From Octopus sinensis (Eukaryota), in contig NC_043001.1 of the NCBI RefSeq assembly GCF_006345805.1, positions 21,762,001 through 21,826,000 of the forward strand: 64,000 nt of DNA. Direction: 5' to 3'. This document shows positions 36,935 to 60,709 of this stretch, one piece after another. Under the pieces are notes generated by a model. That model saw only the letters and a list, made by a program, of their open reading frames with translations. It was not told the origin of the DNA and ran no database searches. Each line of letters begins with the position of its first letter. Within the stretch, counting starts at the first letter, position 1. A program made the position numbers and the translations under genes.

Positions 36935-37308
36935 ACGGCGGTGGCACGTAAAAAGCACCATCTGAATCGTGGCCGATGCCAGCGCCGCTTTGACTGGCTT
37001 CCGTGCCTGTGGCACGTAAAAAGCACCATCCGAATCGTGGCCGATGCCAGTGCCGCCTCGACTGGCTTCCGTGCCAGTGGGACGTAAAATGCACCAATCC
37101 GATCGTGGCTGTTGCTAGCCTCGCCTGTGCAGGTGGCACATAAAAAGCACCCACTACACTCACGGAGTGGTTGGCGTTAGGAAGGGCATCCAGCTGTAGA
37201 AACACTGCCAGATCAGACTGGAGCCTGGTGCAGCCTTCTGGCTTCCGAGATCCCCGGTCGAACCGTCCAACCCTTGCTAGCATGGAGAATGGACGTTAAA
37301 CGATGACA
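36935..37308 (+). mobile_element. RTE 3'-tail element with ~60-bp tandem units
   Basis: ggcacgtaaaaagcaccatc.gaatcgtggccgatgccag units followed by the conserved tail. Confidence 0.8.
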
Positions 37309-38428
37309 CACACGCATGCACACACTTACACACAGGAACGCACATATACCCCTACACAAATGCCACATACAACCCTACGCAGACACGCTTACACAAACTC
37401 ACAAACATACTGCTATGCTTGCAACTGTGTGTGTGTATTGATATTTTTTTACCATACAGTATTAGGGATCCATTTCAATCGATTTCACCAGCCAGTTTTG
37501 CACACAAGTTGGGTGATAACTGAAGGTGGCACCCGTCAGAAAGGGATATTAATCTACCCATTGAACTGACAAATATACAAGGGCCTGTTTTCACAGATTC
37601 TTAGCTGACTATCTTTATCTTTCACTCGTCTCAATCATTAGACTGTGGTACTACCTTGAAGAATTTTTAGTTGAATGATGAATCAAGACCAGTGCTTAAA
37701 TTTTTTAAAGACTGGTACTTATTCTATTGGTCCCTTTTGCTTAACTGCTAAGTCACAGGGATGTAAACACACCAACACTGGATGTCAAGTGATGGTGGGG
37801 TACAAACAGGCACACACCAATATCCTCATCATCAGCATCGTTTAACGTCTGCTTTCCATGCTAGCATGGGTTGGACGATTTTGACTGAGGACTGGCGAAC
37901 CAGATGGCTGCACCAGGCTCCAATCTTGATCTGGCAGAGATTCTACAGCTGGATGCCCTTCCTAATGCCAACTACTCCAAGAGTGTAGTGGGTGTTTTTA
38001 CATGCCACCGGCATGGGGGCCAGTCAGGCGGTACTGGCAACGACCTTGCTCGAATCTTTTTACACATGCCGTCGGCACAGGTGCCAGTAAGGTGACACTG
38101 GTAACAATCACACTCGAATGGTGCCTTTTACGTGCCAGCAGCATGGAAGCCAGTTAGCCGCTCTGGCAACGATCATGCTCGACTGGTGCTCAACGCAAAA
38201 TATCTGGACAGTCAGATGGGACAACAAAACATCCAGATAGACAATACAAAGAAAACAAGGACGGGTCATTCAGAGTTTTCTTTCCTCAGTCGAGTACCAG
38301 ATTAACTTCGCAATTTTGGCTGATTATACTTGAGATTCACACACACACACAACACAGTTCTTTCAGTTTCTGTCTACCAAATCCACTCACAAGGCCTTGG
38401 TTGACCTGAGGCTAGAATAGAAGACATT

Positions 38429-38664
38429 AGGGCGTCGAGCTGGCAGAAACGTTAACACGCCGGGCGAAATGCTTCGCGGTATTTCGTCTGTCGTTACGTT
38501 CTGAGTTCAAATTCCGCCGAGGTCGACTTTGCCTTTCATCCTTTCGGGGTCGATAAATAAAGTACCAGTTTCACACTGGGGTCAATGTAATCGACTTAAT
38601 CTGTTTGTCTGTCCTTGTTTGTCCCTTCTATGTTTAGCCCCTTGTAGGTAGTAAAGAAATATAT
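38429..38664 (+). mobile_element. Nin/Deu-like SINE nested in an older opposite-strand SINE
   Basis: 13-bp TSD aatagaagacatt (38416-38428 / 38665-38677). Host SINE spans ~38340-38760 on the minus strand. Confidence 0.85.
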
Positions 38665-38879
38665 AATAGAAGACATTTGCCCAAGGTACCATACAATGGG
38701 ACTGAACCCAGAACCATGTGGCTGAGAAGTAAGTTTCTTACCTTACTGCTACACCTGAGATTATCATTATCATCTTGACACAATTTGAGCAGTGAATTTA
38801 CATATAATCTGAATAATTGCACTTCGTTAAGATATCACACAAAAAGTTCTTTAATTTAAAAAAGCTCGCTGAAACTAAG

Positions 38880-38946
38880 CACAAACAAATAAAAAAAAAA
38901 TTAAAAAATAAACAATAAAGAGTATTATTTTAAGAGAAATTTTATT
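38880..38946 (-). terminator. Candidate polyadenylation signal with downstream U/GU-rich element
   Basis: Minus strand reads aaagaAATAAAatttctcttaaaataatactc-tttattgtttattttttaattttttttttatttgtttgtg (AATAAA at 38946-38941). It coincides with the boundary where SINE density resumes. Confidence 0.45.
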
Positions 38947-39154
38947 TCTTTACTTGAAAATTACAAAATAAAATTTTAATTGTTCTAGTAATTATCCCAA
39001 ATAGGTTACCAAGTGATCAAAGCGAGAAGAATTCAATTCAAAATTAATGAAACCTAATAACTTTATTCCAGTGTTAACTCGTTTCACTCAAAATGAAAAG
39101 AATGGCAACTGTTGCATAAAATGGTCCCAAAGAAAGCAGCTGACCAAAATGCCT

Positions 39155-39445
39155 AAACCACTCTTTTGTGGCGTACCAGTGTCCAGCACTCAGTCTATTG
39201 AATGTATAAGTGGTTTGCATGTCAACCACTCAGTTCAGATAACAATTGTTTCAGCGTTCCACTGCTCATCAGTTACTTCAGTCAACACTGTTGTAGTTTT
39301 ACTGCTGCCCACTACTTAGTGAAGTTAAAATTTGTGATGGACTATTGTCCAGCACTTAGTTTAATCAACACTCTACAGTGCATTGCCATTAACGACTTAG
39401 TGTAGTTAACATTAATGCGATGTACTCTTGTCCACCACTCAGTTT
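39155..39445. repeat. Degenerate ~41-bp-period array with a conserved TGTCCA(G/C)CACT(C/T)AGT core
   Basis: Cores end at 39194, 39234, 39273, 39320, 39360, 39401 and 39443. Confidence 0.75.
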
Positions 39446-39836
39446 AGCTAACTTTTCTAATACATCAGAGGTTGATATACAAATATCGCCAGTCATAAAA
39501 TAATTATAAATAAATAAAACAAGATTTCGTTTTCATATGTTTACAACGTTTTTTTTTTATGGTTTTTTTGTTAAAAAATAATTTTTCAGTGAAATCTATA
39601 ATTGCCATACAAATGTGACATGACAATTTTCGCCATTATAGAAAAGTCACACCCCAAAATAAGGTGGAACGATTTCGTCAAAAATCCCCAGTGTAAAGTG
39701 CAATCAGTATCAGGAATAATCTAAACAAAAGCTACCATATATTTGGTTCTGTATTTTTCATAATAAATTATATAAATGATTATTACATTAATTTGGCCTG
39801 TATATATGTATATATACGCACATGCATACATATACG

Positions 39837-39884
<48 letters not shown>

Positions 39885-40329
39885 CATATATACATACATA
39901 TATACATACATATATACATACATACACGCATGCATACAAAATTCACATAATATACACATAAGACTAAACTTGAGCTACTTGAAAACTCAAAAAGCAAAAA
40001 AAAATTGAGAAATAAATTTCAGATACATATATTCATACAGAATTGACTAAAAAGAAAAAAAATTTTTTTTTTAATATATACCAAAAAGTTCACTTTTTAC
40101 CGTTTAAAACATGAATATGTTGTTTTAGGGAGGAAAAAAAAAAAAAAAAAAACCCATCTTGGTACACTGCAACTTCAAAAACATTTTGAAAGAATAACCC
40201 AAAATTGCGAGATCGGTGGGTAGGTGGCTGGCTGCTTTGATACTATCTTACAAGGTCAAGAAATACAAATAGCATTACAAAATTCCAGCAGCTCAACTAA
40301 ATATTATGCAAAGTTTATATATATATATA

Positions 40330-40367
<38 letters not shown>

Positions 40368-43300
40368 TATACATACATATATACATACATACACGCATGC
40401 ATACAAATATTCACATAATATACACATAAGACTAAACTTGAGCTACTTGAAAACTCAAAAAGCAAAAAAAAATTGAGAAATAAATTTCAGATACATATAT
40501 TCATACAGAATTGACTAAAAAGAAAAAAAATTTTTTTTTTAATATATACCAAAAAGTTCACTTTTTACCGTTTAAAACATGAATATGTTGTTTTAGGGAG
40601 GAAAAAAAACAAAAATGAAAAAAAAATAGAAAAGAAAATTATATGCCATCTTCTTACCACTCATAATATACATCAGGTCAGTCCAGTTGTTCTTTAATAT
40701 TAATATTTAAAGAGACAGTCTAAAAGAATTGAATTTGATATAACTATTTTTATTGATTTCATTTTGAATGAAGTTCTTCAAAGATAGTGGAATGTCTTTA
40801 AAGTAGAGAGAACTTGGAATGTAAAACCAGTGATTAATAGTTTGGACCATAGTTATAAATATTATGAAACTGGCAAGGAAGTGGCTCAAATATCACATTT
40901 TTTTAATAATAATAACTCAAATAATGTAGACATGGAGCAGAGAATACAAGCCTTTTAATCCATGAACTGAGAAGACGAGAGAGCTGGAACAAAATGAAAT
41001 GCTCAAGACTGTTATTGTAAAGTATACTTTCAGCAGGGTTGCAAGGGAGAAAATAAACAGTTATTAATGCATATAAAACATTTCTGAATAATAGATGTTT
41101 CTGCGAGTTTATAAACTATTTGTGCAAATCTTTTTAAAATCTTATATGTGGCAACCATTGAAAATGAATGGTGTTTTCAGAAAATATCTTGAAATTTGAA
41201 ACATGCATCAGTGACATGTAAAGGAAACTATTGTATGTTGGTGAATCAGTATCTTGTATTCATGCACAATGGAAACAAACTTACTGATTGATGAATATGT
41301 ACTAAAAATTTGCTACTTTTTCGTGATTGGGACAACAATCTAAAAGAATTTTAGAGTTTTAAGAAATGCTTATACGAAACATTTCAGAATATTTTGGCAA
41401 AGTGGATATAATTTAATTTTTGTAATTTAATAGTTTAAAAGAGGATAGATAGAAAAGAGTTATCATGAGGATTGCAGCCAAACATTAAATAGTATATATA
41501 CCTTATATAATGTAAAGATCCATATTAGATTATTATTATTAAGGACACTGACTAAAATATTGGAATGGAGAGAAATAAGAAAGAGAAACAGAATTTAAAA
41601 GAAAAATAGTTTTAATCCCTTTTATAAATATATTCTACTCTCTTTACTATTTGCACCATTGAAACGAATATAATAGAAATTATAATGATTAAGATATTTT
41701 CTATGTAATAGAGGATTTGAAATCTAAATCAAGTGATTAAAAAAGTAGCCACCGATAAGAAATGACAAGTGAACTAAAGAAAATTTTATGAAAAATGGTT
41801 CATAAAAAAGCGTGTTTTCATTTCAATAAAAATGGTGTTTAAAATGAAAGTCGATTTCTTCTTTTCATATGGAGTAACAATTAAGCTAAAATTTCTACAT
41901 TTAAAGCAACATAATTTATGGGAATAACTGAATATTATACAATTTCACTGTAACTCACAAGCCAGTTAAGCATGGAGTATTGTAATAGAGACAGAACTCT
42001 GATTGTTCTTAACATCTAACTTCATTATACCTACCCTTAATTTCACAGATATATATATGCAAACTTTTATTTAAAAAAAAGTGCAGTTAAGAAAATAAGA
42101 ACACCTAGTTTTTAACCTGAAGAATTTGTTTTAGCAGCATAATAAAAATGGAAACTGTGTTCACGGAACTTGAGAAGTTAAACAGTTTGAAAAATTGACG
42201 GATGACATTTTCATACTCAACCTCTGATGCAACAATCATTAAAAGAAAATAGAAAGAAACAAAAAATTCTACTTTTACATTTGATGAATTGTTGAAGACA
42301 AAAAAATGTCAACACAAAAAATAGCAAGCAAAACAGTGTGTTAGATATTAGCACATTCAGTTGATGTTCCTGATTCTTAGTAAAGATTAAGCATTTAAAA
42401 TACTTAAATTTGACAAGGTTTTCTTCTTTTTTTTTCACAAGCATCAGAGAGATATTGGGCTGGTGTTAAAGGTTTTGGAACAAGTCCAGTGAATAAAGTA
42501 GTTAATCTCATTTTATATTTTAAATCATTGAAAGTAAAGTAGAAAATCCAGAATGTCTAGTTTGTTTTTATGGATTGTGTAAAATGTAAGCTTCTTTTAT
42601 GACAAACACATAAAAAAAAAAAAGAGGCAACATGCAATTCTCCAAATATAATTATCAGTTTCATAAAAGTTGAAGAATTATACAAAGATCTTTACTTTGA
42701 ATAATGTATTCATTAAAACCTTGACTACTGAATTCATTCTATCTTTAAAAACTTCAATTAAAGGGGGGAAAAAATACAGAGTAAAGATAATGCTAGCACA
42801 AAGTTAAATAGAGTGGTGTTGCTTTAGAAAATATTTTATCTTCATCACAATCATAATCTAAATGTATAAGTGTTTCCTCCAAAGTATAATCAATGTTTGA
42901 TACAAATATTTTATTAATGAATGTATCATCATTGTTGTTTTAAGGAGACATCCTACAGTTTTACAGTTTAAAGCTACTATATCTTCAAACTGGACTTTGA
43001 AGAAATTTTGACACGGTGAAAATAGATAAGACTTTAAAGAGTGAAAAATATCAGAAAAACAAAAATGATCTCAATTTAAGTGAGGTTTTTTTTTAAAAAA
43101 AAAAGGAAAAATAATTAAAAGTACCAGTCCATCATTTCCAAGAATAAAAGCAATATCAACAAGTCCAAATCTCACTGAAGATGCGTACAAAAGGATATGC
43201 AAAGAGTATTTAATTGTTTTAAAACTTACTTCCTATATCGCTGTCTCTAAGCAATATTCTAAATTTATAGAATCAAATGTAACGGGAAGACTAACTGGTA

Positions 43301-46136
43301 AAGGCTGTAATTTAAAACATTGAGGAATATTTTTTCCAAAATTTATTCCTATAATCCTTGCTTTTAAAAAACCAAAAGTTTCTTAACAAGTGACAATATA
43401 AAATTAAAAAGAGATTATATTTGCTCCCTACTATATCTACACTATTATATATGCTTTATATATATATATATATATGCACAAATGAATAATACTTCTAATT
43501 TTACTCACATTCCATTACTTTACACTGAGCCCCTGCCACATATATAAAGTATAAATTGACAAAATAGTTTGGAGATATCTTTAATATAAAAACTGGTTTA
43601 TCATTATAAAACTAATCTAATACTATAGTATAATACTTATAAATCTAGCTAAAGGTAAGATATTTAGGATGCTATTTTGAGGAACACTAAAAATTAGATT
43701 TCAAAATAAATTTTAAATGAGTTCTTTTTTATAAATAAAATTCACAATACATATAAAGAAAGGATTTGTAAGTTACAAAATCCATACGCCATCAGAAAAT
43801 TATTTTCAAAGAATAATGCATTTTTATAAAATTAAATTCAGTTTTCATTTTTTTCTCTTTTTTGCTTTTTAACGTCTGTTGAAAACAGTATAAAAATGCT
43901 GCTTAGAGAGATATGGACTTGAGAAATATGCTGTGAAGCTTTAAGTTTGTGCTGGGAACTGCAATTTCACGACTGAAATCGCTTATATTCTTGTAAATCA
44001 TTCTCACATGAGAAATTGGAGGACAGGAGGAGTAATGGAATTTGCAGCCACAGAGCAATATCTATAGAACATCAATTAGTGCTAAGTGGCATTTTTTTTT
44101 TTTACAGACAACACTGCAAAAGAGTGGTATAAGTATTTGAAATAATTCTTTGAAGTGACACATGTATGTATGCAAGCATAACTACATACATACACACATG
44201 TAACTGTCGAAAACAGAGAAATAAGAGATGCAATAAACAAGTAATTTGGTGGGAGAAAAAAAAAAGGAGCTATTAGCCTTTTTTTAAATGGTAAATACTT
44301 GTTTTTTTTTCCTATTGATATGCTGCTTTGTATACATAAAATAAATATCTACATTGAAACAATGTTAACAAAACAGTCATTTGAAACCCTGTTTTTTACG
44401 AAAGAAGAAAACATAATTCAGTTGTACATTGGAAACATATCTATCTGGGCATTTATTTTTATGGAAATGAAGATGTTCGATGTCTTATAAAATAGGTAAA
44501 TGTTTATACACTGCAGAACTTGGGAATTTCTATGAAAGTTTCAATGTTTAAAACAAAGACAGAAATAAACAAAATGAGAAACTTTTTTTGAATATATTTT
44601 AAAGAAAAAAAAAATTAATAAATAAATAAATAAACAAAAGAGAAACTTGATTTGGAATTTTGTGAATTTATATATTTTAATTAATTAATTTTAGGGAAAT
44701 CTTTAAAAAAATATTTAAAGGACTAAACAGATTATTTAAGAAAAGGAAAATGTTGCTTGGTAGTATGTTGAAAATGAATGGAAATCACTACTGCAAATGA
44801 AAACAGAGATAGCAGAAATGGTAAAATGAAATGGAGAACAACTGTTTAGTTTGGCAGCAGTAGCAGCAATAACAGCAGTAACAATGAAAATAACTACCTA
44901 GATAAATAAATAAATAAATGAAATGAAACCCCACAACAATATTGGCAGTAGAACAAATCATAAAATTAACTGATTTTTATGAGTATCAATTATATATTTT
45001 TAACATTCAAGTTAACTTCAATGACAAAAATATATACCTCGTATTGTACCTTTCACCAAAGTATATCTTTGCTAACTTGCAAAATACCACTATCTTATAT
45101 ATATATATATATACTCTAGAATGTAATGTGTGTGTATAGGTTTGGTAATAAAAACAGGAGGAAAAGAAGTTCTAACAGAATATATGTATATATTTATATT
45201 TATTAGCAGTAAAGCTACACAACTTTAAACTTCATAGCTTTGCAGTTAATATATGTATGCGAGTGTGTATGTATGTATGTATGTATATACACACACTCAC
45301 ACGAGTTCAACAATCTGTATATTAAGAGTATTCGGCTCAGCAGTATCCTTAGCATACAGATAGTAGAAATATATAATATTCAGATAGATATGCATATTTA
45401 CTAAATAACATACATACATCATCAGGTGTTCAATTCTGAAAAGCTGTTAACAAATTTCATTATTAATAAGAAAAAAAAAAAAAATCTAAGAGAAGCAATT
45501 TTTCCATATTTTTTCAATCTTATTTATAAGCTTCTTTTTGAGCCAACATGTAACTCTTTGGAAGTTATGATTGAAAGTTCTTTTTAGAGTTTTATAACTG
45601 AAATCTTGGGATTATATCATTTAAATAAACCTTATTTTCTAGTGTTAAATTTTGAGGAGACCTAAAAATTTTAATTCAATTTGTTATGCTACTATTTCTA
45701 TAAATTGCTTGGAAAATCTAAAATTACTAAGGTCGCAACAGAATGATACCAAGGACAAGATTTATGGATACAGTCCATAAATCTCTACTACTATGCTCAA
45801 TGCAAGACAGTGATTCTTGGTGTGGTGTTGTGAACCAATCTCAGTTGTGGCAACTTTAAGATGAAAATACATAAACATACATACACTCACATTCATTCAA
45901 GTACTTCATGTATTATAGATGTCCATCAAGTAATGAACAGCTTATAAAATGAGAGAAACTCAGAGTAGATATGGGAACAATTTAGCTTCACATAAAGGAA
46001 TAGATTTAACTATGTTCACTGAGAACTCTTTTTTCATGTTTGTAAACCTAAGCTCACACAAGCTTACACACACATAATACATGTATTTATTATATAATAC
46101 ATTATTATATTTATTATATATGTATATATATGTATA

Positions 46137-47474
46137 TAAGGTTGGCCAAAAATTACCCGACAGTAAATCAAATTTCCATAAATACTTGATATTCAATTCA
46201 TTCCAATTATGTTTAATAATTGAATGCTGTGAGTTAATATCACTTTTTTTTTTTTTTACATTTGTCTATTTATTAGTGAAGTCTTATATAAGATAATTTT
46301 TTGTTTTAATTTAAGGTTTTTTAAACCCATAAACACGAACAAACTGACTCTACAACAGAGAATCTTTGTCACTGAAAAATACTACAAATATGGTAATGCA
46401 CAACAGGTCCGTGATTTGGATAAACGAGTATGGTGATGAAATAAATCCTCCGCATAGAGATACTATTTATCATCTACGAGATCAATTTCACAAAAACGGA
46501 ACTGTGGCAGATTTACCATGATCAGGTGGGCCACATAGTCTTAGAACCAGAAAAATGGCAGGTTCTGTGGCTACTGCTATCACACAAAGTCCACAAAAGA
46601 GTGCTGAACTTGATATTTCAAGATAGTCCCTTCTGAGAATTTTGCAAGAAAATGGCTATAAAGCATACCACCCTAAGTTAATTTATGGTCTGGTGGAGGA
46701 CAATGCAGATAGGCTACAAATATCATTGTTCATTAGCCAATTTGACAATGTTCCTGAGCTATTCAATAAGACAATGTGTGATGAAGCATCATTCACTTTA
46801 AATGGCATAATTAACCGCCACAATTATGTGATTTATGCTACTGAAAACCCACATTTGACTTACGAACAACTGAATCAGTCTGGTATCACTGTTTGGGGCG
46901 CTCTCAGTTCTGATGGGTTATTAGGCCCTTATTTTTTTTAATGAAACTGTTACTGGCAATAACTATTTTGAAATGCTGAATGAATATGTTTTTCCGCAGC
47001 TGTGAGATAGACCGGACTTTAAATACTTTGCTGTTCATGCAAGATGCTGTGCCTCCCCATTATCCCCAAAGGTACGTAATCTGTTGGACACTTCGCCTGC
47101 AGATTAGATTGGATATAGAGGGTCTATTGAGTGGGCTCCATGTTTATGTGACCTCACACCAATGGACTTTAGTAGTTGGGGAATGATGAAAGATCAAGTT
47201 TTGAAAAGAAAACCAAGGACTCTAGCTGAGTTGCAAGCTGCTATAGCAACTGAATTCAAACTAATTAATGCAAATAAGGTACTTTGTTGTACTACCTGGA
47301 ATTCTGTATAGACTCAAATGGAAAAAATGTGTCGCTCAAAGACTTCAGTTTGAACAATTTTCATGATGTTTCATATTTAGATGCTTTTATTAAATTCATT
47401 CAGCTGTTAAATATAAATAAATCTCGGAATTAAATGTTTTTGATTTACTGTCAGGTGACTTTTAGCCAACACTG
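46137..47474 (+). mobile_element. Near full-length, decayed Tc1/mariner-superfamily transposon (maT/rosa-like)
   Basis: ~35-bp TIRs (gttggccaaaaattacccgacagtaaatcaaa and its inverse) with TA flanks. Frameshifted transposase with CDEASF..NG.INRHN, TVWGALS..GLLGPYFF, QDAVPPHY and DLTPMDF motifs. Confidence 0.9.
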
Positions 47475-50400
47475 TATATATAATTTTTTGTAGAAATATA
47501 CTTGATTGTTGTAAAAGGTAACACTACAATTAACGTCATTAATTTTTAGATCAATATATGTTCCATCATACTTCAAAATGTATGATTTAAAATTTGATTT
47601 AAAGCCTTTTTTCCTTTGAGGTATCTGATAATTTAGGGGATACATAAGTTTAGCAAGTTCTCTAACATCAGTTTTTAAGCAAGCACAAACTCTCTCGAGA
47701 ATTTCGTCCAATTTTCTACTGCCCAATATTTGTTGGTTTAAGGGGTTTAAAATAATAATAACAATAAGGTATTTTTAATGAGAATTTCCAGAACACCTGT
47801 AAGTAAAATTATTAAAATGGTAAACTTTAGAAAAGTTTGCCTTTTTAACAAATTTTAACATGCTTTCAGCTACAAGTGGAACATAGTTTTGAATTCTTGA
47901 CAAATCAAACTGTAACAGTGGAGACTATTATTTCATTACATATGGCAGCTTTCAAAAGTTGTAGTTATTGTGTAAGTTATAATTAAAGTTAGTAGGTTTA
48001 AAGTATTCAACAAGTTGGAGAGAGCACTAGAGATGGCTGCAACCATAAAATTGTACATTTGCAGAGAGTTTTCTTTCTGGCATAAAAAAAAAACTAAGAA
48101 AACAAAACAAAAGTGTAATTATTTAAAAACAAAGATTTTTAAATATACCCTTTTCTTCATATTTCTTAAGTGTTTACAAGCAAGAAATATGACCAATAAA
48201 TTATTTCTATACTTAAAATATGAGCTAAGAAAAAAATGTTTAAAATCTATTTCTGAAAATTTTATTTATCAATCATTTTAGAAATGGAAGGAATTTGTAA
48301 TATAATGCTTCCTACAGCTCATAATCATCATCATCATCATCATCAATATTTTTATTATTACTCATTATTATTAATTGTTGTTGTTAAAGCATTTCATATA
48401 GATTTTTCTTTGTATAGTTAGTTCTCTAGTATTAAAAGGTCAAATAATGAGAATGAAATCTAAAACCTATCTACTTTTTTCGTAGTCCAAAATTATCTGG
48501 AAGACATTCAAATACAAGTTTTAGACCATTCGTAGTAAAGGTAAAGTTTACTATTATTTGTAGACATCATAACAAATAAGCTTTAAAATATAAACTACAA
48601 TAGAAATAAATTCCTGCTTTGAATCTAAATTTTCAACTTACTTAAAGAAGTGTAAGGGTAACATCATGTGCCTGACTGTTTGAATGCATGCCCATACTTT
48701 TTGGTTTTAGTTAACATCTAACATCATATATAATAATAATAATGAAGAAATAGTCAACTTTTACAAAAGTCTAAGTGATATGTTGCAAAAATAGATTAAA
48801 TCTAATTCTAGTTAACAATCATCACATTGTTAGTACCCGACTTGAAGACAAATTAACTTTCTTCCATTCAAAATAAAAGACTTGAATGAAAGAGATGTAG
48901 ATAGCTCAGAATCACATTTGGCTGGCTAGTTAGTCATACCCTCAACACAGAAAAGATAATAATAGTTCATAAAATCGAACAACAATAGTGTCTTTTTCCA
49001 ATGAAATATTTCAATTTTGAATACTATTATCACCAAATCTTTCTAAAGACATTGCTTTCAGGGTACTAATATCACCACTCTGTCAAAAGACAAGAACCTC
49101 AAACATGTGAAAGAATGCCTACATGTTCATAGTAAAAATGTTTCATATTTTTAAATAAAGAAAGAACAGCACCAGAGTTTAAAGCCAGTTTTAGAGCTTT
49201 CTTTATAAAATATTTTTGAAAATTAAGAAATAACATTTCTCAATTACTAATTGAAATTTGTTTTCATTGGTTAATTATCAGTTTAAACACTATACTCTTT
49301 GTTCTCATTCTATAATGTCTATTTTTAAAAATTGTTTTCCATGTATATGACACTATTGCAATAGTAATAATTCACTTTTTTTTAAACTTTGAACGATCAT
49401 TATGACAATACCATCATACTGTGTGTGCATGTGTGTGTGTTTGTGTGAGTGTGTGTACGTGTGTATATATACACACATACACACACTTTTATTTGTATAC
49501 ATACAAACCGTATTTGTATACATACACACGCATATTATATATATATATATATTCACACACACTTATATTTGTATACATACACACACGCACACTATATATA
49601 TATATGTATATATAATGTGGTTGTCTGCAGCTTAAAAATACATACATACATACATGTAGGTATATACAGTTATTTGGTCACAAATTCAATCAAGATATTT
49701 GAATAGTTGCAATCAGAAAATTTTGGTTTTGGTAAATGTAAAATATCAGTCAGTGCTTATTAAAAAATATGTTTATAAAAACACTCTCACAAGGATAAAC
49801 TTTGCATCACATTATGTGAGAGTTAGCTCACCTCTGCTGTCACTCCAACTTGTTTAATACTCAAATAAAATCCTCACTCAAGGATTTTATGCCCTGAAGA
49901 TGAAAAAAATCTTATGGAAATGAAATAAAGCAAAATTCATTTATAATGTCAAGAAAAATGCACAACCTTAAGCAGAAAATAATAGGGATGGGGCAAGTGT
50001 CTTGTTTTGTTTTTTTTTGTTTTTTTTTTCAGTTTTAATGGACAATAAAAGTAAGAAAACATTCAATAGCAATTGTATATGAAATACTTTTTTTTTTTTT
50101 AATCCTTTTACTTTTTCAAGGAAATAAATAATTAGCTGAAAACTACGAAGAGAAATTTAATGGTGAAAATTTAATTGCTCTAGAAACAATATGTATTATT
50201 AAACTATGACACTAGTAATTAATCTCTTCTTATTAACAATAATTATACAAAATGGTAAAATTTTCTCACTAGAAATGATATATTTAAAGGTTCAGAAAAA
50301 TTCAGGCTTTGAACGAAGATGCATTTGAAACAACAACCACAAGGACTAGCATAATAATTAGAATGTTTATACAGTAGTTATCTTTTTATGTTATTTCTCT

Positions 50401-53310
50401 TTTTTTAAATTTTTATTGTTATTAGTATTATCATTTTTCAGTTCAAATACCATAGTAAAATATGCCTCTCCACTTAGCAAAGTCTTTCTCTTCTATGTAG
50501 TTGTTTAAACTGTATGCTTTACTATTCCACGTTGTATTAATTGGTTGAAAGATTTAAAACTCATGAATACAATGTTTTAAAGCTTGCTTTACATGAGACA
50601 CAAATATTGTAAAACCATCATCACCATAATCATCACACAAAAAAAAAAAAATTGTCTAATAATTATTATTAATATTTATAATTATCATTATTATTAGTAT
50701 CATCATTATTATTTTCATGATAAATATTATTATTAAACATTTTCAAGGAAAAATGTAATGAATTCAGATGTGAGTTCCATTATCACCTTTTTTCTTTTCT
50801 CCTTTTTTTTTGCATCAACATATTAGATTTTAATGTTTGCTTTTTTTCCCCCAACAGAGAAGAATATTGAAACTAATAATAAAAGAGATAATCTAAGGGC
50901 AATATTAGTAGTATTTCTATATAGAAAATCAAAATCTCCTGATACCAACTTGATTAAATAAACTCCTACAAATCAATAAAAAATAGAGGTCCTAAATCAA
51001 TAAGTTTTAAAATTGATATAGGATTCATAGTAACAGAAGAAAAGCAAGCTCTGATAAATCATTAATTTATCTTTTAAGAGTGAAAACTATTTTTGAAATA
51101 CACTAATTCAAGAGAAGTCCTAGAGCTGTCTGTTTATCAATGACTGTCAGAAATACAACAAGCTAATTTTTCTGCCATGTGTATACATTATACAGGGTTG
51201 CCAGTCAGGATAATATACCTTCCTGAGAAAGGAATAGGGATTATTTCTTGTATTTTGAAACATAATAATATTTGCCAATTAATACTATGTTATTCATTCT
51301 ACCAAACCATAAATGACTCTTGCTAAGATTTACTTTAATTGTAGGTATTTCACATACTATTTATTATCTGCCTAAAACACAAAACAAATACAGTTAAAAC
51401 TAAAATGAGCAGATGTGGAAGACAAAAATGGTAATTTTTGTATGATGTTTGAAATTGTCTTCAACGCATCATTTTCTTCCTTCACGAATTGATAAATTAA
51501 ACATTGTTTTTTTTATCCTATGATGAAGGAGAAAGTAATTCTTTATCTGTATCTCATGTAATATATTTTATCTGCTTGTTTCAATGATTGCATCCAATTC
51601 ATTTTCTTCCATAAGCCTAAATATTAATCTGTATTTCATTTTTTCAAAATCCACTAATTTCTTGAAAGACAAGGTTAGACTCACATCAGATTGAAGTCAG
51701 AAGCATAAAGAAGAAAATTAGACAAGTTTTTAGTTTATCTTGCCAATATCTATGCTCAATTGTTTATGAAGAAGTTTTGATAGAAAAGAGGCTAAAACCA
51801 CTGTATATGATTTTCTAGAAATACTATCCCTTAACGCTAATGTTACTTTCAAAAAAACATATTAATGAAATACTGGCCAGATATAAAATAAGAATGAAAA
51901 CTAACAAATATCGAATTGGCTAAAATATTACAGCAATAATACTTACAAAAACATCTTTTAAATACATCTGTTTTTAAAACATCTGTTTTAAAAAAGGACG
52001 TATTTAAAATATTTTTTTAAATACAGATTTGAAAAAAATCTGTGTTTTTTTAAAATTTGTATTTAAAAAAATTTTTACCAGCATTGACAAAAGGCAACGG
52101 AAATCAGTATTTGGAAATTGTGATTAAACTTCTATGAGGTTTTCGTAAAATCACTAGAACAGTTTCCTAATCTCAATCTGATATTTTTCAATATTTCTTG
52201 ATTTAAAAAAAAAAAATTGATCCCAAATATATTTTTGTTCAAACCAAGTAAAGGCAACCCTAATATATGTATACATGTATACACATCATGTAAATAACAG
52301 CTTAAAGTGATTCTATATTATATATCACAGTTAGTTGTTAATTACCGTCTACTCCTGATGTCAAATTATCACATTGTAAACAAAAACATCATGGTATTTA
52401 ATTCTGCAAAGAGAATGTTTTATATATATATATATATTATATATATATAATATATATTATATATATTATATATATATATGTACATATATTCCAAACAAGA
52501 TGAAATGAGAACGCTGTTCCTATTTCAAGCTCAGCTATTTGTCAGATTAATCACCATAGCATCAGTTAATATCAATTCTGTATCATAAATTGATGTAATA
52601 ACTAGCCTGTTCTTCCTTTGTCTATTTATATATACATATATACACTTCTATATATACATATAAATAAACTGGGGTCTATATGCCGATTGCAGGATGATCA
52701 CACAGATCCCAAGAAAAATTGCTTTTAATAATAATAGTAATAATAATAATGATGGTAACAGCAATAATAATGACAATCAAATGAGGTTTACTAGAAATGC
52801 TCCTCACAGATAACATTTCAACAAACAATGGTATGCAGAATTGACCAACTCAAGTTTACATTTTTACAATAAACAAATTCCACCATCAAAACCGTTCTAC
52901 TCAAAGAGTAGGTTTTGTCTTCACTGAACCAATAGATGAAAGAAAAAAAAACATTTAAGTAGAAGTTAAGCCACAAATAAACAAGATTTACAAAGTTAAG
53001 TTGGGAAAAAGAAAGGAAACACTAAGCAAAATTATGGAAAGTTCTACATACCTCTTAATATACATGTTGCATGCATACATATATATATATATATATACAT
53101 GAATGTGTGTGTATTCATATATATCTATACATACATAAAAAGTATATATAGTATATAAATTTATATATAATATAAATATATATGCACATATAAATATGCA
53201 TATATAAATATATGGATATATACTGTATATGTATTATATGTATATAATATACAGACACACACATCCATACATACATACATATATAGTATATAGGTGTATG
53301 TAAGTGTGTG

Positions 53311-53941
53311 CAAGGTGTTATCAGAAAGTTTCAGATGGCACATGCTTCATGGTATCTACTTTGTGTGTTCAGTACATAAGGTTTTCTATCTTTATATTAA
53401 AATGGCTCAGCAATTTTTACAATGGCTCACAAATTTGTGCAACAAGTAGCCATACTTTTGCATGAAGCGTGGAAAATCTGTTAATGAGACCCCTAAAATG
53501 CTTCATCAGGTTTGCTGGGCAAACATTCTTTAGGTTAAACACAGTTGTCTTTTTATTATTTTTTTTTTGCAATTTTTCAGTGGCATGCACATTTCAAGGC
53601 CAGTTGAGCTTTGGTTCAAGATGATGACATTTCAGTGAGATTAATAACAGATGAAATGCCAGAGAATTAGGGAAAAACTTTTGAACTCATCCATGAGGAT
53701 CATTGCTGAACAATCCATCAGTTCTCTCACAACAGAATCGCATATAGTGTTGGACGGCCTTCACAAAGAGAACTCCTACTGCATTTTTCAGGTGCAGATG
53801 ATGCACTGGGATCGTTGTGTACATTCCCAAAGGGACTATTATAAAAGGGATGGTACCCAAAGAGAAATAACATATGAAATATATTATGTACTAGTGGGTT
53901 TTTGCTTGCCCTGGCCTAGGAAATTTCTGATACTACCTCAT
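53311..53941 (+). mobile_element. Internally deleted mariner element
   Basis: Imperfect TIRs aggtgttatcagaaagtttc / ggaaatttctgatactacct. Decayed N-terminal (KRGKS..ET.KML; FQWHAHFK...VQDD) and C-terminal (WDRCVHSQ.DYY) transposase motifs. Confidence 0.8.
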
Positions 53942-55003
53942 TTATATATACATATATATATATATGTTTGTACACATATAAGCACACACACACACACACA
54001 CATGTATAGACTTACACAAAGACATGCTTGAATCTATTCCCAAGAGACAGGATTATTATGATGACGTTCCTATCTATGGATAGGAATATAAATACATAAT
54101 GAATATTTACATTTAGAAGTTGAAACCTCTAATCACTTAGCAGTGGTTTGATATGTTTTGCAGTTAAAGAATATCAATAAAAAAGCTGAAATGTACACAA
54201 ATATTAAAAGAAAGCGGTTATAAATATATATATTTTTTTACATAGGCTCCTATATAGGATATGTAAAACAGATACACAGTATATATTCATACTTGTATAT
54301 ATATTTATTTATACATATGCATAAGCAGATGTATACATATATATATACATATATATAAATATATATATGAATCTATATACACACATATATACACAATTGT
54401 ATACATATATATATATATATACACATATATATATATATAAATACAAATCTACACTCATACATATATATAATATAATATATATCAATACATATGTGTGTTT
54501 GTGTGTGTGTAAGTGTATCTATGTATGTGTGTATTTATATGCATCTCTATATAGGCATACATATAGGTTTTTAAAAGTGATATTAATGAAGAAATTATTT
54601 AAATGCTAAAATGCAAACTGTCAAATCATGATAGAAACATTTTCATTTTTAAGCAGTTTCAATGACTTAGCTAATTTTAATCTTCAGTGTAACATTTCAG
54701 TAATTTTTTTTGTCTCTTCTCCAATATATCTAAAATGGAAAATAAGAAGAGATTTCGGTAGGATTTATAATAAAACATTAGTAAAGTGAAATGATGCTTT
54801 CATAAGTTAAATGTTGAAAATTACTTCTAAAGCACATTATATATATAGAAATAAATACACACATAAGTATATATGCATACACACACACACACGCAACACA
54901 TATAAGTATATACATGTATATGTATGTGTGTGTGTGTATATATACATATATATATATATATGTATAAATACCTGTGAATACACAAACACACACATACATA
55001 TAC

Positions 55004-55036
<33 letters not shown>

Positions 55037-55873
55037 ATAATTACATATATGTTGTTTGAAACATGCATGCACATTCATGTTTGTGTATGTGTGAGTGTAT
55101 GTAAATACACATACTACATACTACACTCATTAAAGCAAAATTAATTCTTGAAAACATATTCCAATTAAAGAAAAGAAAGGCAATAGTAATACAATAAGAA
55201 ATGGACACACATTTTCTTCTTTTTTTTTCATCCAATTAAAGGTGGAAATTTTAGTTCTTGAAGTAGAATTCTTTCTAGAGTTCCTTTCAATGGGTGCAAT
55301 GCCTAAAAAGTAGCAGAGTTGCCAAGTGTCTTACACTTGGCTAGCAGAACTCTCAATTTCTCTGACCCATTATAGATCAGAAATTACACACCTTTGTATA
55401 GACAAAATACAGAGCAGATGTTAAAAATCTTTGAAGAAATTTTTTTTCAAAATACTTAAAAACTGAAAGCTTTTTACTGACTTGAAAATTTCTTCATCAT
55501 CATTATGATAATTTCTTTAGTTGACCGTAATAATATGTCAAGATTAAGAATCATAGCAATATCATTTACTTTGAAAGAGAGTTCATTTTTCTTATATATA
55601 CACAAAATTTTTGACTAATTCTAAAATGTTTGAAAATGAATTTCTCTCATTGCATCTTTGAATAAGCAACATATATTGACAACGAACAGAAGAAATGGTC
55701 GCAGAATACAGCAGCTCAACCAGCTAGTGTGAGTGGAATCAGAAAGAAAATGCCATGAAATATATCCACCTTTCATGATGTGAAGATGTATATACTTTTC
55801 AACATTGTAGCAGGTTATGTTTGATAAGCCAAAATGAAGTCAGTCAAAAGCTTTAGTCAACATTTCACAAATT

Positions 55874-55877
<4 letters not shown>

Positions 55878-55929
<52 letters not shown>

Positions 55930-55930
55930 G
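55878..55930. repeat. (GA)n microsatellite
   Basis: Directly visible. Confidence 0.95.
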
Positions 55931-58900
55931 AAACTATATCGATTGAAGCAAACATCAGTTTTAAAAAAGCCTTTCATGGATACATCAAAGCATACAATGT
56001 ATTTACTTCAGTAGCAAGAAATACCCTTTATACGATGTTAAAAATACATATCTAAAATATTACGAAAAGAAACATAGAAATTAGCTCAGCTGAGAGAGCA
56101 ATTTACTTGGAATTTACATTTTCAAGGATTAAATCCCAATTTCTGATTAATATGTGACAAAACTTATCATCACATAATCTATATATTTTTTTTTAATTCT
56201 TCAACATTATAACCTTGATTGCTTCCCCATTGTTCTTTATAACAGTAGTAAGTCAGCCAAGAAGAAACTAACAATGCCACCACTTAGTGAGACAGGAAAA
56301 TAACTAACTTTGCACAAGAAAAACATTTGATCAATCAGTTGAGATAAAAGAAAATATTTTACAAAATGCAGCAAGGAACAATTTTAAAATAAGATTAAAA
56401 TTCTTATTTCAAATTATAATGTCATGATTGATGAGTACAAAAAGTTTCTTTTTGAAAGAAACTAAATAAATATGTTTTTTTTAGGATGAGAAACGAAACC
56501 TAACAAAAAAAAAAGAAGAAAAAAAGGGACAATGGTATATCAAATACTATGAAGAAAATCCATGTGCATGCAAATGAATCTGAGGTTTGTGTGTGCATGT
56601 GTGTGTGTGTTAATACAGATAAATGTATTTCTCTACGCCCTTGTTCTCTCTTTCTCTCTGGTATACAAATTAGAGAGAGAAGTCAATCAATTAATGTAGA
56701 GAGAGCGAGATAGGGGAAGAAATATTATTCAAATATAAAATATTTGCTTTCTAGAGATTTTCTTCAAATGTGAAAAGGCATATATAAATCTCCACAATAT
56801 AATTTTACACACATGCGCATCATGATAAACATCGAGTACATGTATGCATGCAAGTATATATATGCACACACACTTGCACATAGCCATCTACTGAACATGA
56901 ATGAATACATTGTTTCTCTTACATTTATGCGTATGTATGTTTGTATATATATGTATATACATATACATATATATATATGATACACACACACACACACATA
57001 TATATATATACTTATCTACTTATAAGCAAATATATGTGTATACATAATGTTAAAAATACACCTATATTTTCAATTTGAGACAGTTTTTCCCATATTTATG
57101 TAATATTACCAGTTCCTGTATCATACACTTTAAAGTCTCATGTATCTGTATTTAAATGTAAATAACTCTTAAAATATTGAAACAAGGTTTCATGATACAT
57201 TGACTGTGGTACATCAAGACATTTAAGAGTTCTTTAAATATAGATAGTGAGAACAAAATTCAAGTTCCATTAATCTCCTGTACACAGACAACTGGTTTCG
57301 ATTATGTTCCCTAAATACACGACTGAATACACACCGTTTTTATTCACTAACAACACAAGAGCTGATTTGAAATAAAAGATCAGAATTTAATCAAATTCAT
57401 ACACTTCCTAGCTTAGAAGAATAGCTGGTAATCTGTCTTACCAACTAGAAACCTTGAAAGATAACAACTTATTTCTTGAGACATGATTGATCTTAGATAT
57501 GTAAAGATAAAAGATTGTTTATGTGGGTGCATGTATTTGTGTATATGTGCATGCATATATTCGTGTGATGTGGATACACACATGCACATGTATAATTGGA
57601 ACATGATTAATTTTGGTCGTTTTTTTTTTTAAAGTCTTTTTAAAACACTTGTAAACACACACAGACACACACAACTTATGTACATGAAAAATTCTAAAAT
57701 ATACATTTTATAAAAGAAATCTTAGGTGGGTTTTAACTGAAGAAATAGTTCTCTGGTGTCTTACATTTTTAAGTTCATCAGTAGTTAAATACATCCACCA
57801 AAATGTAGACAACTGTTTCAGAAACAATATCTGGAACTTTTTATGGTAGGGAAATTAGGGTTTCCTACAATTTCTATTGTTTTTCAATGATAGGATGTTG
57901 CCAAATGAGACATTTTACTATTCAGATGACACTTGCAGAGAACTGTTGAGTTCTTTCTCGTTGTATAGTTTCCTTAAACTCATGTAACTGTCTACATTAT
58001 ACATGCTGAACATCATAGCGGTTTGATTGGAAAAAAAAAATCTGTACAAATAAGATTTAAAAGAGACGAAAAAAAAAATGTATACAGAATTCAATAAAAG
58101 ATAAATTACATTGATATATGGAGGAGACATAAATATAGATGACATTTTACCAAGAACTGTCAGAACAACCAGAATATTTAAAATGTATTTGCATTAATAA
58201 AGTCCAATCAATGGCAAATGTATGTAGGAATCAGACTGAACATTCTAATGAGATTTAACGATATACATCCACAAAAAGACAGCATTATCAGCAAAATGTT
58301 ATTTCATGTGCACATAGTTGTTCAAATTTAATTATGTTGCAGAGGAATCATGGTTTTCATTTTTTTTCTTTTCAAAGTTATATCAGAAAAAAAAAAAGAT
58401 TTATGATATTAATTACAAGTTTGACAATAAACCTAAGCTGTTTTAAAAATTTGGCAAATATTTCTACATAAAGCCTTAAAAATATCTAGCACCAATTATA
58501 AATGTTATTTTAAAAGCTTTCTAAAAGAACAAATAGTTATAATTTTTTCTTACAATTTGAATAATGGTGGATTATAGACGGTTCGTAATAAAACCTTACA
58601 AATATTTAAAAAAAAAAAAAAAGCCATCAAGGAAAAGCAAATGTTCTGGAATTATTCACAGCAACAACAATTAGACTAGAATTGGATATAAATGTCTGTG
58701 TGTATGCATGTTGTGTAAGAGATGCTTTCAATTGAGTTATAAGTGTTATAAGCAAATGTGGAAGTAGTTTGATATGTAATCCAATTTACAAAGTATCTAT
58801 TAAAAGGAATCAAATTTTTTTTAAAAAAAAAAGAGATCAAGGTAATTTTTGGTAAACTGACAGATTATACAAGAAAAACATTAAATACATAATAATTATA

Positions 58901-59629
58901 TTGTTCAAACAACAGTCTAATGTTTGTTACTGGCACTATTATTGCTAAAAACAGTTTCATTTGGTTGTAATAAACAATGTGAATATATTGATTGTTTTCA
59001 AGAAATCAGTTTTAGAATTAATACAATAAATAAGTGCTTTTGTTATCAATGTTTCTTTAAGTGCAACTTATTGTTCTCGTCCTAGACCAAGTTGTTTTAA
59101 TGAAAATTGTGATTATTTTGAAACAGGGAGGTAAATAAAATAAAAATTAATTATTGGAGTTTTAGAATCAGATTAACTCACATATTCTAGCAAAACTGTG
59201 ATTGCAGTGAATTACTTAGCTAATCAGTAAATATTTTCAATATGATAAACGTGTGTTAACATCAGTTAACCACAAAAAGATGTCGAAATCAAAAGAAGTG
59301 TAAATCATGCAAATTGAAATCAAATAGATTACTGAAATACTCTAAATGTCTGAATTTAATTATGTCTCCTCCAAGTGATATTTAACAAGCCAACTAACAA
59401 GATTTCTAAATTTCCTAACAGCATGTAAATTGGCAAAATTCAAGATATATGGTTATAGACTGTTCAGTTTCTCCTTGGAACGATAACACTACTCTGGAAA
59501 ACCAATATCGGTGAAAAAATATTGGTAAAACAGCCACTGAGCTGAAGAAAAGACATGATTTTAATTTTGTTGTTCGTTTTCTGTCTATTGTACCTGGATT
59601 GAAGCAAAGTGAAGTTTCCTTGAATACCT

Positions 59630-59861
59630 CTAAGCAAACATTTCTTCTTCAATGGGTTTTGATACCCAGGTACCACAATTGTTTTCTTTTAATTTTTTCA
59701 GCATCACATTTTTAGCTGTCTGGAAGGGAGTAGCCATCATCTTGGCTTTGTTATAAGAAGGGGCAGTAAGCAGGTCATTACGATCAAATTTGCGGCAGAC
59801 TCTCTTAAATTCTTCATACAAGTTGTGCTTTGTTAGACGAGAGAATAGATTTTTCTCAATC
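59630..59861 (-). CDS. ADAR: ADAR1 terminal coding exon (IP6-binding C-terminus, stop codon)
   Basis: Acceptor ttattctag|G at 59862/59861 (phase 2, matches the upstream donor). Translation IEKNLFSRLTKHNLYEEFKRVCRKFDRNDLLTAPSYNKAKMMATPFQTAKNVMLKKLKENNCGTWVSKPIEEEMFA* matches the ADAR C-terminal motifs SR..K, Y...K.....Y...K and G.W..KP.E. Confidence 0.96.
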
Positions 59862-60170
59862 CTAGAATAAAATGAAAAATGAATTTTATTTTATAAATTG
59901 TTATATTGGTTAGTTTATTTATACATAAAATCATTATTAAAAAAAAAAAGAAATTAATTTGCTTTTAACAGAGGATATTGAAGTAGAGAAAGTTATAGAC
60001 AATAGCATGTGAATATTTAGTTAATATGTAAACATGGTCCAATGGTGGAACATCTGTCATGTTTACAGAAGATGTGGGTTCAAGTCCTATGGACAGCCTT
60101 TGATATTTTCTATCCAAATGGTTTTAACCCAACATTCACATACTTATTTATATTTATAGTTTTATAAATA

Positions 60171-60512
60171 ACAGTGAAGATGCATGGCTCAGTGGTTAGA
60201 GTGTCAGGCTTACAATCGTGAGGTTGTGAGTTCAAATCCTGGACCAGGCTGCGTGCTGTGTTCTTGTGCAAGACACTTTATTTCACATTGTTCCAGTTCA
60301 CCCAGCTGTAGAAATGAGTTGCGACGTCACAGGTGCCAAGCTGTATCAGCCTTTGCCTTTCCTTGGATAACACTGGTGGCGTGGAGAGGGGAGGCCAGTA
60401 TGCATGGGCAACTGCTGGTCTTCCATAAACAACCTTGCCCAAACTTGTGCCTGGGAAGGTAACATTCTAGGTGCAATCCCATGGTCTGTGTCGTGATTGA
60501 AGGGGGTCTCAG
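60171..60512 (+). mobile_element. tRNA-derived SINE with 15-bp TSD in the ADAR1 last intron
   Basis: Head tggctcagtggttagagtg...gagttcaaatcc; TSD atagttttataaata (60156-60170 / 60513-60527). Confidence 0.8.
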
Positions 60513-60709
60513 ATAGTTTTATAAATATAGTTATTTATAGTTTTATCTAATTCAAGTTTTTTTTATAGTATTATCTGCTTCAATTTTAGTTTTTAGTTTT
60601 ATCTATAATTGAAAGCAAATTATTTCATGTTCTCTCAAAGGTTCTAAATTCTCATGGCATTAAGAACTTCATATCATGTAATTACCAGAGATAGAAAACC
60701 TTAGGTACA

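Follow-up and report, generated by a model that had tools for sequence, protein, structure and literature searches.

A repeat-free interval adjoining the ADAR1 stop codon of Octopus sinensis may be a long, alternatively polyadenylated 3′ untranslated region

The 64-kb stretch of Octopus sinensis DNA analysed here (contig NC_043001.1, positions 21,762,001 to 21,826,000; referred to as the window and numbered from its first nucleotide) contains, on its minus strand, the 3′ end of the gene for the RNA-editing enzyme ADAR1. Directly downstream of the ADAR1 stop codon lies a 20.9-kb interval that is free of all 13 interspersed repeat families recurring in the window. We propose, with about even confidence, that the interval is a long, alternatively polyadenylated 3′ untranslated region (3′UTR) forming the terminal exon of ADAR1. 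We infer from the genomic sequence that the interval is transcribed, remains unspliced, uses both a proximal and a distal polyadenylation site, and owes its lack of repeats to selection. Coleoid cephalopods edit RNA far more than other animals.

A repeat-free interval adjoins the ADAR1 stop codon

To find repeats, tandem and low-complexity DNA was masked, and 14 profile families built from the window's own repeats were searched back against it with nhmmer, so that the detectable families are those that recur within the 64 kb. Outside positions 38757–60174, the profiles produced 102 matches in 68 merged blocks, or 1.6 blocks per kb. Inside these positions there were no matches to families of short or long interspersed nuclear elements (SINEs and LINEs), even at E ≤ 10 in a search of the interval alone, and self-BLAST detected no multi-copy repeats between 38762 and 60141. 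The sole exception to the absence of repeat-family matches is a local duplication within the gap. The gap measures 21,418 bp and is about seven-fold longer than the next-largest one of 2,889 bp. The Poisson probability of finding no repeats in the gap is 1.5e-15 if the window-wide repeat rate is assumed and 2.7e-9 if that of the sparsest flank is assumed. An earlier reading of the window, made from the sequence alone, had described a SINE/LINE desert from 38.77 to 60.05 kb, which agrees with the absence of family matches inside and the 68 blocks outside.

Both edges of the gap are located next to features of the gene. One edge is just upstream of the last ADAR1 exon, and the other is about 180 nt past a distal AATAAA hexamer. 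The first SINE beyond the distal edge has its tRNA-like head toward the gap and the same sense as ADAR1. At the proximal edge, a tRNA-like SINE head containing the GGTTCAAGTCC box was recognized by eye about 185 nt upstream of the last-exon acceptor, which confirms the limit of 60.05 kb given previously. This head is single-copy in the window and was missed by ARAGORN, Rfam and the repeat profiles. No tRNAs, SINE heads included, were found in the window by ARAGORN or by Rfam at the gathering threshold.

The GC content of the interval is 27.8%, compared with 31.7–36.6% in the non-repeat flanks and 45–47% in the repeats; the low value is due in part to the lack of GC-rich repeats. The excess of T over A is 0.068 in the gap versus 0.03–0.05 in intergenic DNA, a weak difference of about two standard errors.

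The gap could have arisen from a bias in the insertion or survival of SINEs and LINEs, for example in a closed-chromatin or late-replicating AT-rich block of the germ line or through ordinary heterogeneity, and its coincidences with gene features would then be due to chance. We regard this as unlikely. The gap has two sharply defined edges, each at a feature of a gene, it is seven times longer than the next largest, and P remains below 3e-9 even at the sparsest-flank rate. Microsatellites and A/T-rich targets of the kind present in the flanks occur in the gap as well. Furthermore, the gene-body-level CpG content argues for a germ-line-methylated transcribed unit and not for a silent intergenic block, and islands conserved in cuttlefish show that at least parts of the gap are functional. 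Insertion bias is nevertheless consistent with the uneven repeat density elsewhere in the window (no repeats at 22–24 kb and few at 19–32 kb), with the gap being the most AT-rich part of the window, and with most of the gap being unconserved and containing decayed transposon remains and microsatellites.

The interval adjoins the ADAR1 stop codon directly on the coding strand, with no gene in between; the next gene, encoding a BTB/POZ protein, starts at 18.35 kb. Pfam A_deamin matches the last two ADAR1 coding exons jointly (E=4e-29, profile positions 180–329 of 329). The protein encoded by the exons is 92% identical to a cluster that includes the Sepia (Acanthosepion) pharaonis "double-stranded RNA-specific adenosine deaminase", and this Sepia relative carries dsrm and A_deamin domains. 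The gene appears to be ADAR1 rather than ADAR2, judging by the names in the source entries and by its C-terminal motifs; the exons for the N-terminal Z-DNA-binding and dsRNA-binding domains, which distinguish ADAR1 from ADAR2, lie beyond the window. The search with the ADAR1 protein returned no octopod match, only the cuttlefish cluster and distant molluscs.

The CpG content of the interval is at the level of gene bodies

The ratio of observed to expected (o/e) CpG was computed on unique, non-low-complexity sequence, for which the GpC control was about 1. The ratio is uniformly 0.27 at 42–59.6 kb, the same as in the last ADAR1 intron (0.27), and the body of the BTB gene has 0.11–0.25. The values are 0.43 at 27–38.8 kb and 0.70 at 21–27 kb. 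A maximum-likelihood fit with a single change point placed the step at 39.9–40.4 kb (log-likelihood ratio 11.2). In Octopus bimaculoides, CpG methylation is concentrated in the bodies of genes with constitutive expression, and little of it is seen in intergenic DNA or on transposons (PMC9476566). Given this pattern, and with CpG depletion serving as a proxy for methylation, the interval looks as if it belonged to a transcription unit that is methylated in the germ line and has its end near the distal polyadenylation signal.

With repeats included in the calculation, the CpG o/e is 0.38–0.39 at 3000–6000 and 60000–63000, within gene bodies, versus 0.70 at 36000–39000, in intergenic DNA. SINE copies seem to lose CpGs faster within the two gene bodies, through gene-body methylation or because of differences in age. 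The CpG o/e of 0.70 at 21–27 kb may mark the promoter region of the BTB gene. The ADAR1 locus of Sepia pharaonis was considered as a second test of the CpG step and of the repeat desert, and was unsuitable for both: it is CpG-poor throughout and has almost no intra-locus repeats anywhere.

Conserved islands are collinear in octopus and cuttlefish

The octopus sequence was compared with the ADAR1 locus of one other species, S. pharaonis (L003), which covers 15.6 kb past the stop codon, using sensitive BLAST after masking. Eight islands form a collinear same-strand chain with a score of 277.5. Thirty permutations of 200-nt blocks scored at most 223.5, and the reversed, complemented and reverse-complemented sequences scored 91–174. 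In octopus the chain extends to 11.6 kb past the stop; in Sepia it extends to 15.5 kb, the end of the sequence compared. Five of the nine islands (I1–I5) are within 2.3 kb of the stop, four of them belonging to the chain and I5 having been found separately. The other four islands are located 8.7–11.6 kb past the stop (window 50927–47998), which corresponds to 12.0–15.5 kb in Sepia. Octopods and decapods are commonly taken to have diverged more than 200 million years ago, which makes it very improbable that the islands are neutral.

None of the non-coding islands was found in a mollusc contig (L002) with 75% amino acid identity, and a cuttlefish transcript contig (L001) includes only 81 nt of UTR. 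The Sepia gene model CAE1321271.1 (L003:47861-53595) departs from the canonical last exon at a GTAATG within it and adds open reading frame (ORF) pieces at 50128–50247 and 53542–53592, which are 2.2 and 5.6 kb downstream, so that the conserved C-terminus is replaced. The extra pieces are probably an artefact of the model inside the 3′UTR; otherwise, they hint at transcription there.

Conserved islands form complementary pairs

Six of the nine islands pair mutually, I1 with I3, I4 with I5, and I7 with I9, and they are complementary in both species. The variable positions of the helices keep pairing on the sense strand through four G-U wobbles and one double change. The I1–I3 helix, which has a perfect 14-nt core in octopus, is retained in Sepia and extended on the other side, with one double (compensatory) change and two G-U changes. 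In the I4–I5 helix, ACUAUACAACG pairs with UGUUGUUAGU, and an A-U pair of octopus is G-U in Sepia. The I7–I9 inverted repeat has a 22-nt core at 91% that extends to 47–54 pairs. Its duplex energy is −49.4 kcal/mol on the sense versus −42.9 kcal/mol on the antisense strand in octopus, and −43.2 versus −32.9 kcal/mol in Sepia; at each of the two variable core positions, G-U pairing is possible on the sense strand but not on the antisense strand. Random pairs of 65-nt segments match the energies of I1–I3 and I7–I9 in about 1% of trials per species.

The I7–I9 arms and the island between them could derive from an ancient DNA transposon, with the arms as its ends and the island as an internal remnant, in which case the gap would need another explanation. 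The arms of 22–34 nt, about 1.8–2.0 kb apart, have the size typical of a non-autonomous DNA element, and a Tc1/mariner-like relic is located 700 bp away. However, the module is single-copy in the 64 kb of octopus and in the 63.6 kb of cuttlefish sequence, and it is arranged identically with respect to ADAR1 in the two species, in order as well as in orientation, and is collinear with the other islands. Its interior is otherwise unalignable, unlike that of a recently shared element, and neither a target-site duplication nor a familiar terminal motif is visible at the arms. Transposon ends also do not explain the two further complementary island pairs in the proximal UTR. We consider a transposon origin of the module highly unlikely.

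What is unusual about the helices is that they are conserved in the 3′ region of an ADAR gene. It is conceivable, although rather unlikely, that coleoid ADAR1 binds or edits its own mRNA through helices kept in a giant 3′UTR since the split of octopus and cuttlefish, and thereby sets its own level, with new SINEs excluded as competing pairing partners. The structure involved would include a duplex of about 30–55 pairs that closes a predicted loop of about 1.8 kb with a conserved miR-7 site, 10–11.6 kb past the stop. The sequence-only reading had suggested, as one possibility, that the interval was purged of retroposons so that the mRNA would not become its own double-stranded substrate. This is contradicted by the conserved inverted repeats and by (TA)n tracts at 53075–53251 and 54296–54482, each about 180 bp long with about 88–93 units. 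As RNA, the (TA)n tracts would fold into long A-U hairpins, and they draw many sub-threshold Rfam matches (mir-297, mir-466, mir-3149).

Seed matches to conserved microRNAs are on the sense strand

Blocks identical between the two species contain 57 conserved 7-mer positions, which were compared with 40 conserved microRNA (miRNA) seeds. The sense strand had three matches and the antisense strand had none, with 0.14 expected per strand; the resulting P of about 4e-4, or about 0.009 without miR-76, has to be read in the light of an informally compiled seed list, to which miR-76 was added after the published target table had been seen. According to PMC9699675, TGGTGCTA, GTCTTCCA and ACAACGAA are the target 8-mers of Ovu-Mir-29-P1, Ovu-Mir-7 and Ovu-Mir-76. 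No ADAR1 row occurs in the portion of its supplementary tables that was searched.

The conserved elements specific to the sense strand are confined to 0–2.3 kb and 8.7–11.6 kb past the stop. A previous suggestion that the interval is dense in sites for miRNAs or RNA-binding proteins does not fit the sparse conservation with cuttlefish, which amounts to nine short islands. No Rfam family reached the threshold in the interval. In a permissive Rfam scan, all 76 of the 76 matches were microsatellites resembling repeat-derived miRNA families, far below the threshold, and they were discarded.

The interval contains decayed and duplicated DNA

Apart from the transposase relic, no ORF at 38.8–59.6 kb has Pfam support. 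The interval contains at least one decayed relic of the Tc1/mariner type, a frameshifted transposase antisense to ADAR1, for which the Pfam support is weak (DUF4817, E=6e-4; HTH_Tnp_Tc3_2, E=0.07) and the search of the PDB produced no match. Of the two old Tc1/mariner relics reported in the sequence-only reading, this one is thus weakly backed, and the second, at 53.65–53.9 kb, lacks Pfam support. A peptide encoded at 45731–45856 on the plus strand (GRNRMIPRTRFMDTV...SQLWQL) resembles the C-terminal tail of LINE ORF2 without support from Pfam; if real, it would be an ancient LINE fragment in the interval. The copies of the local duplication are 469 bp apart, and each contains microsatellites and an A-run. 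The duplication is recent and located near the distal end of the interval.

Polyadenylation signals and the extent of the 3′UTR

The sense strand of the interval contains 20 AATAAA and 35 ATTAAA hexamers. Among these 55, the AATAAA at 38946–38941 is followed by the largest proportion of U (0.70, including a U10 run), and it is the signal with a U-rich tract that had been noticed before at the far edge. The proximal AATAAA at 57344–57339 directly follows a 13-nt block that is identical in cuttlefish, and is itself followed by GGTGTGTATTCAGTCGTGTATTT. A depletion of AATAAA on the sense strand (0.56 versus 0.96 of expectation) was dropped as evidence because it is also seen in the SINE-rich region and is non-significant relative to a fourth-order expectation.

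The proximal signal offers a different reading of the interval, which we consider possible but doubtful: the ADAR1 3′UTR would be about 0.3–2.3 kb long and end at the conserved proximal site, and the other approximately 18 kb would be a separate, insertion-intolerant non-coding domain. Such a domain could be a same-strand long non-coding RNA, a downstream-of-gene transcript, or cis-regulatory DNA for ADAR1 or its BTB neighbour, comparable to mammalian transposon-free regions close to regulatory genes. A short 3′UTR agrees with the AATAAA and GU-rich element at 2.29 kb, right behind the Sepia-identical block, with the median 3′UTR length of 380 nt, and with the location of five of the nine islands in the first 2.3 kb, after which 6 kb are without detectable conservation. 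With an inverted repeat that encloses a 1.8-kb loop, the distal islands at 8.7–11.6 kb make up a compact module that could be a separate unit. However, the gap runs unbroken from the last exon and no repeat intervenes between the proximal site and the distal module, and the CpG depletion is uniform at 42–59.6 kb, at the level of the ADAR1 intron. The sense-strand miR-7 8-mer and the sense-compatible wobbles of the distal islands are more in keeping with a transcript than with an enhancer. That the neighbouring BTB gene on this strand is transcription-factor-like favours a separate domain; that 20 kb of SINE-rich DNA separate the gap from its coding start speaks against one.

Several observations weigh against a long ADAR1 3′UTR. 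Octopus 3′UTRs have a median length of 350–380 nt, with the longest ones used by nervous-system genes, and 20.7 kb would exceed this median more than 50-fold. The proximal AATAAA at 2.29 kb suggests that the major isoform is much shorter, and the AATAAA at the far edge is by itself weak evidence since there are 55 hexamers on the sense strand. There is no alignable octopus–Sepia sequence at 2.3–8.7 kb past the stop in the comparison, which reached 11.6 kb. The supposed exon contains the degraded remains of a transposase, a recently duplicated unit and numerous microsatellites, and most of the interval is therefore unconstrained. The CpG step is gradual, with an o/e of 0.39 at 38.8–42 kb. The Sepia locus gives no independent test, because it is CpG-poor and repeat-poor everywhere, and the informal seed list, with miR-76 added later, lessens the weight of the seed matches.

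A 3′UTR of about 20.7 kb had been proposed in the sequence-only reading, and the present results support it in part. Four independent, though indirect, lines of evidence, namely the gap boundaries, the CpG content, the island chain, and the seed matches and helices, fit a minus-strand unit that continues past the stop codon. For the last 9 kb (38.9–48.0 kb) the evidence narrows to the absence of repeats, the CpG content and the polyadenylation signal.

Gene order and other features of the window

On the minus strand, the ADAR1 stop codon at 59.63 kb is followed by the repeat-free DNA (59.63–38.76 kb), by SINE-rich DNA (38.76–18.4 kb), and then by the coding start of the BTB gene (Table 1). The BTB gene is 100% identical to isoform X3 of O. 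sinensis LOC115211989 and is on the same strand as ADAR1. Its ATG exon is preceded by an acceptor-like tttgcag, which implies that a 5′UTR exon should lie further upstream, in the SINE-rich DNA at 18.4–38.8 kb. Protein searches with the ADAR1 exons and with the 262-residue ORF of the BTB exon returned no octopus read-assembly contigs, a type of entry evidently missing from the collection searched, and exact look-ups of an ORF from the interval and of the BTB isoform found no record. At about 61200–61400 on the minus strand, in the last ADAR1 intron, a reverse-transcriptase-like peptide (SETWAVTAEDMRRLERNEVSMLRWM...) resembles the tail of an RTE-type LINE, and Pfam gave no match to it. An open stretch on the plus strand at 63820–64000 (CAHGVCTLSENGKIDVINGPLELLQLSTCEKDVRKEGVPKW), beside the ADAR1 intron, runs to the edge of the window.

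Table 1 Coordinates of features in the 64-kb window of Octopus sinensis DNA
Feature	Position	Strand	Remarks
BTB/POZ gene LOC115211989	13708-18350	-	Downstream neighbour; ATG exon 18225-18350, next exon 13708-14510
First SINE beyond the gap	38427-38761	-	tRNA-like head toward gap
Repeat-free interval, candidate long 3′UTR	38762-59629	-	3′ of the stop; 20.9 kb; 20.7 kb to the distal polyadenylation signal
Distal candidate polyadenylation site	38870-38946	-	AATAAA 38946-38941, then U/GU-rich tract; 20,684 nt after stop
Local duplication with microsatellites	39847-40152 / 40316-40622	.	Unit of ~306 bp, 96.8% identity
Tc1/mariner-like transposase relic	46233-47308	+	Frameshifted, degraded; ORF pieces; antisense to ADAR1
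I7–I9 right arm TCTCTCCAACTTGTTGAATACT	48002-48023	-	11.6 kb after stop; 1816 nt from left arm
Conserved island I8	48476-48522	-	Inside I7–I9 loop; single copy in window and Sepia locus
8-mer GTCTTCCA in I8	48498-48505	-	Ovu-Mir-7 target 8-mer; conserved
I7–I9 left arm AGTATTAAACAAGTTGGAGTGA	49840-49861	-	9.8 kb after stop
Conserved island I6	50892-50927	-	8.7 kb after stop
Proximal 2.3 kb with islands I1–I5	57310-59629	-	Collinear and conserved with Sepia pharaonis
Candidate proximal polyadenylation site	57339-57355	-	Conserved block TGTTGTTAGTGAA running into AATAAA (57344-57339), GU-rich element after; 2.29 kb past stop
7-mer ACAACGA	57958-57964	-	7 of 8 nt of Ovu-Mir-76 8-mer ACAACGAA; also pairs with UGUUGUUAGU block of I5
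Helix I1–I3 partner arm UUAUGUCUCCUCCA	58119-58132	-	Pairs with 59360-59373
8-mer TGGTGCTA	58487-58494	-	Ovu-Mir-29-P1 target 8-mer; in 13-nt block identical in Sepia
Helix I1–I3 arm UGGAGGAGACAUAA	59360-59373	-	Perfect 14-nt pairing with 58119-58132
Last ADAR1 coding exon	59630-59861	-	Stop TAG 59632-59630; acceptor AG 59863-59862
Last ADAR1 intron	59862-62839	-	SINE/LINE fragments abundant; repeat blocks 60174-62738
tRNA-like SINE head (GGTTCAAGTCC box)	~60045-60110	+	By eye; ~185 nt upstream of last-exon acceptor; single copy in window
Penultimate ADAR1 coding exon	62840-63083	-	Deaminase domain; 84-86% nucleotide identity with cuttlefish transcript and locus

Proposed mechanism and comparison with known systems

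Based on the repeat gap, the CpG content, the conserved islands and the polyadenylation signals, a mode of expression of the ADAR1 3′ region can be proposed. The proximal site about 2.3 kb past the stop probably yields a common, shorter mRNA. Read-through isoforms would reach at least 11.6 kb, so as to include the I7–I9 module, and would probably extend to the strong AAUAAA/U-rich site at 20.7 kb (window 38.94 kb). New SINE and LINE insertions would be removed by selection in the exon and tolerated in the neighbouring introns and intergenic DNA, since within an exon they would bring in polyadenylation signals, splice sites and new inverted-repeat partners. Constraint on the sequence of the UTR would be sparse and limited to short islands, some of them miRNA seed matches (miR-29, miR-76, miR-7), and to the arms of the long-range helices. 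Most of the UTR sequence would evolve freely, which fits the presence of the relic, the duplication and the microsatellites.

Extended 3′UTRs formed by alternative polyadenylation reach up to about 18–20 kb in Drosophila and in mammalian brain (Hilgers 2011, Miura 2013, as cited in PMC9699675). The same study lists conserved octopus miRNA sites 7.2 kb (ELAVL4) and 12.9 kb (RFX1, alignment position 12,857) into the 3′UTR, so that octopus 3′UTRs of over 12 kb have a precedent. An ADAR1 3′UTR of 12–21 kb would thus be an extreme case of a known type. The ADAR1 interval resembles extended 3′UTRs in having a putative many-kilobase terminal exon that adjoins the stop, proximal and distal polyadenylation signals, and sparse sense-strand seed matches, all of them read here from genomic DNA. 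It differs in that a 3′UTR of 20.7 kb would equal or surpass the longest ones known, and in that ADAR1 is not among the neural genes of the octopus table (ELAVL4, RFX1).

Mammalian genomes contain transposon-free regions, which are concentrated near developmental regulators and regarded as cis-regulatory. Amid repeat-rich DNA, they lack interspersed repeats over more than 10 kb, have sharp edges, and are explained by selection against insertion rather than by conservation of individual bases. The octopus interval resembles them in its sharp edges, in the proposed explanation, and in lacking, over more than 10 kb, the families that recur in the window. Unlike them, the octopus interval abuts a stop codon, holds an old DNA-transposon relic, and is defined only by the window's own repeat families. 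The mammalian regions were reportedly described by Simons et al. in 2006.

Inverted Alu pairs and the mouse CTN-RNA are double-stranded 3′UTR elements that are bound and edited by ADAR, which affects nuclear retention or translation. The octopus ADAR1 region shares with them long-range arms in one 3′ region and a predicted imperfect duplex of about 30–55 pairs around a 1.8-kb loop. In contrast, the octopus arms are single-copy and conserved with cuttlefish instead of being recent repeat copies, and they belong to ADAR1 itself. By editing its own pre-mRNA, ADAR2 creates a splice site, as cited in the supplement of PMC9699675. The two cases are alike in that an ADAR transcript has, or in octopus would have, a conserved double-stranded element, which in octopus may be a substrate of the enzyme family that it encodes. 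However, the ADAR2 element is intronic and alters splicing, whereas the octopus helices are downstream of the ADAR1 stop.

The exclusion of young retroposons and CpG depletion at the level of gene bodies are two indicators, obtainable without transcript data, that may flag long terminal exons in repeat-rich invertebrate genomes. If ADAR1 transcripts end at 2.3 kb, the interval would instead be a non-coding domain intolerant of insertions, whose study could start from these conserved elements. The seed matches to miR-29, miR-76 and miR-7 and the three long-range helices conserved with cuttlefish are candidate handles on the control of ADAR1. If it exists, an ADAR1 3′UTR of 12–21 kb would rank among the longest known and would suggest that the editing enzyme is under strong control after transcription.

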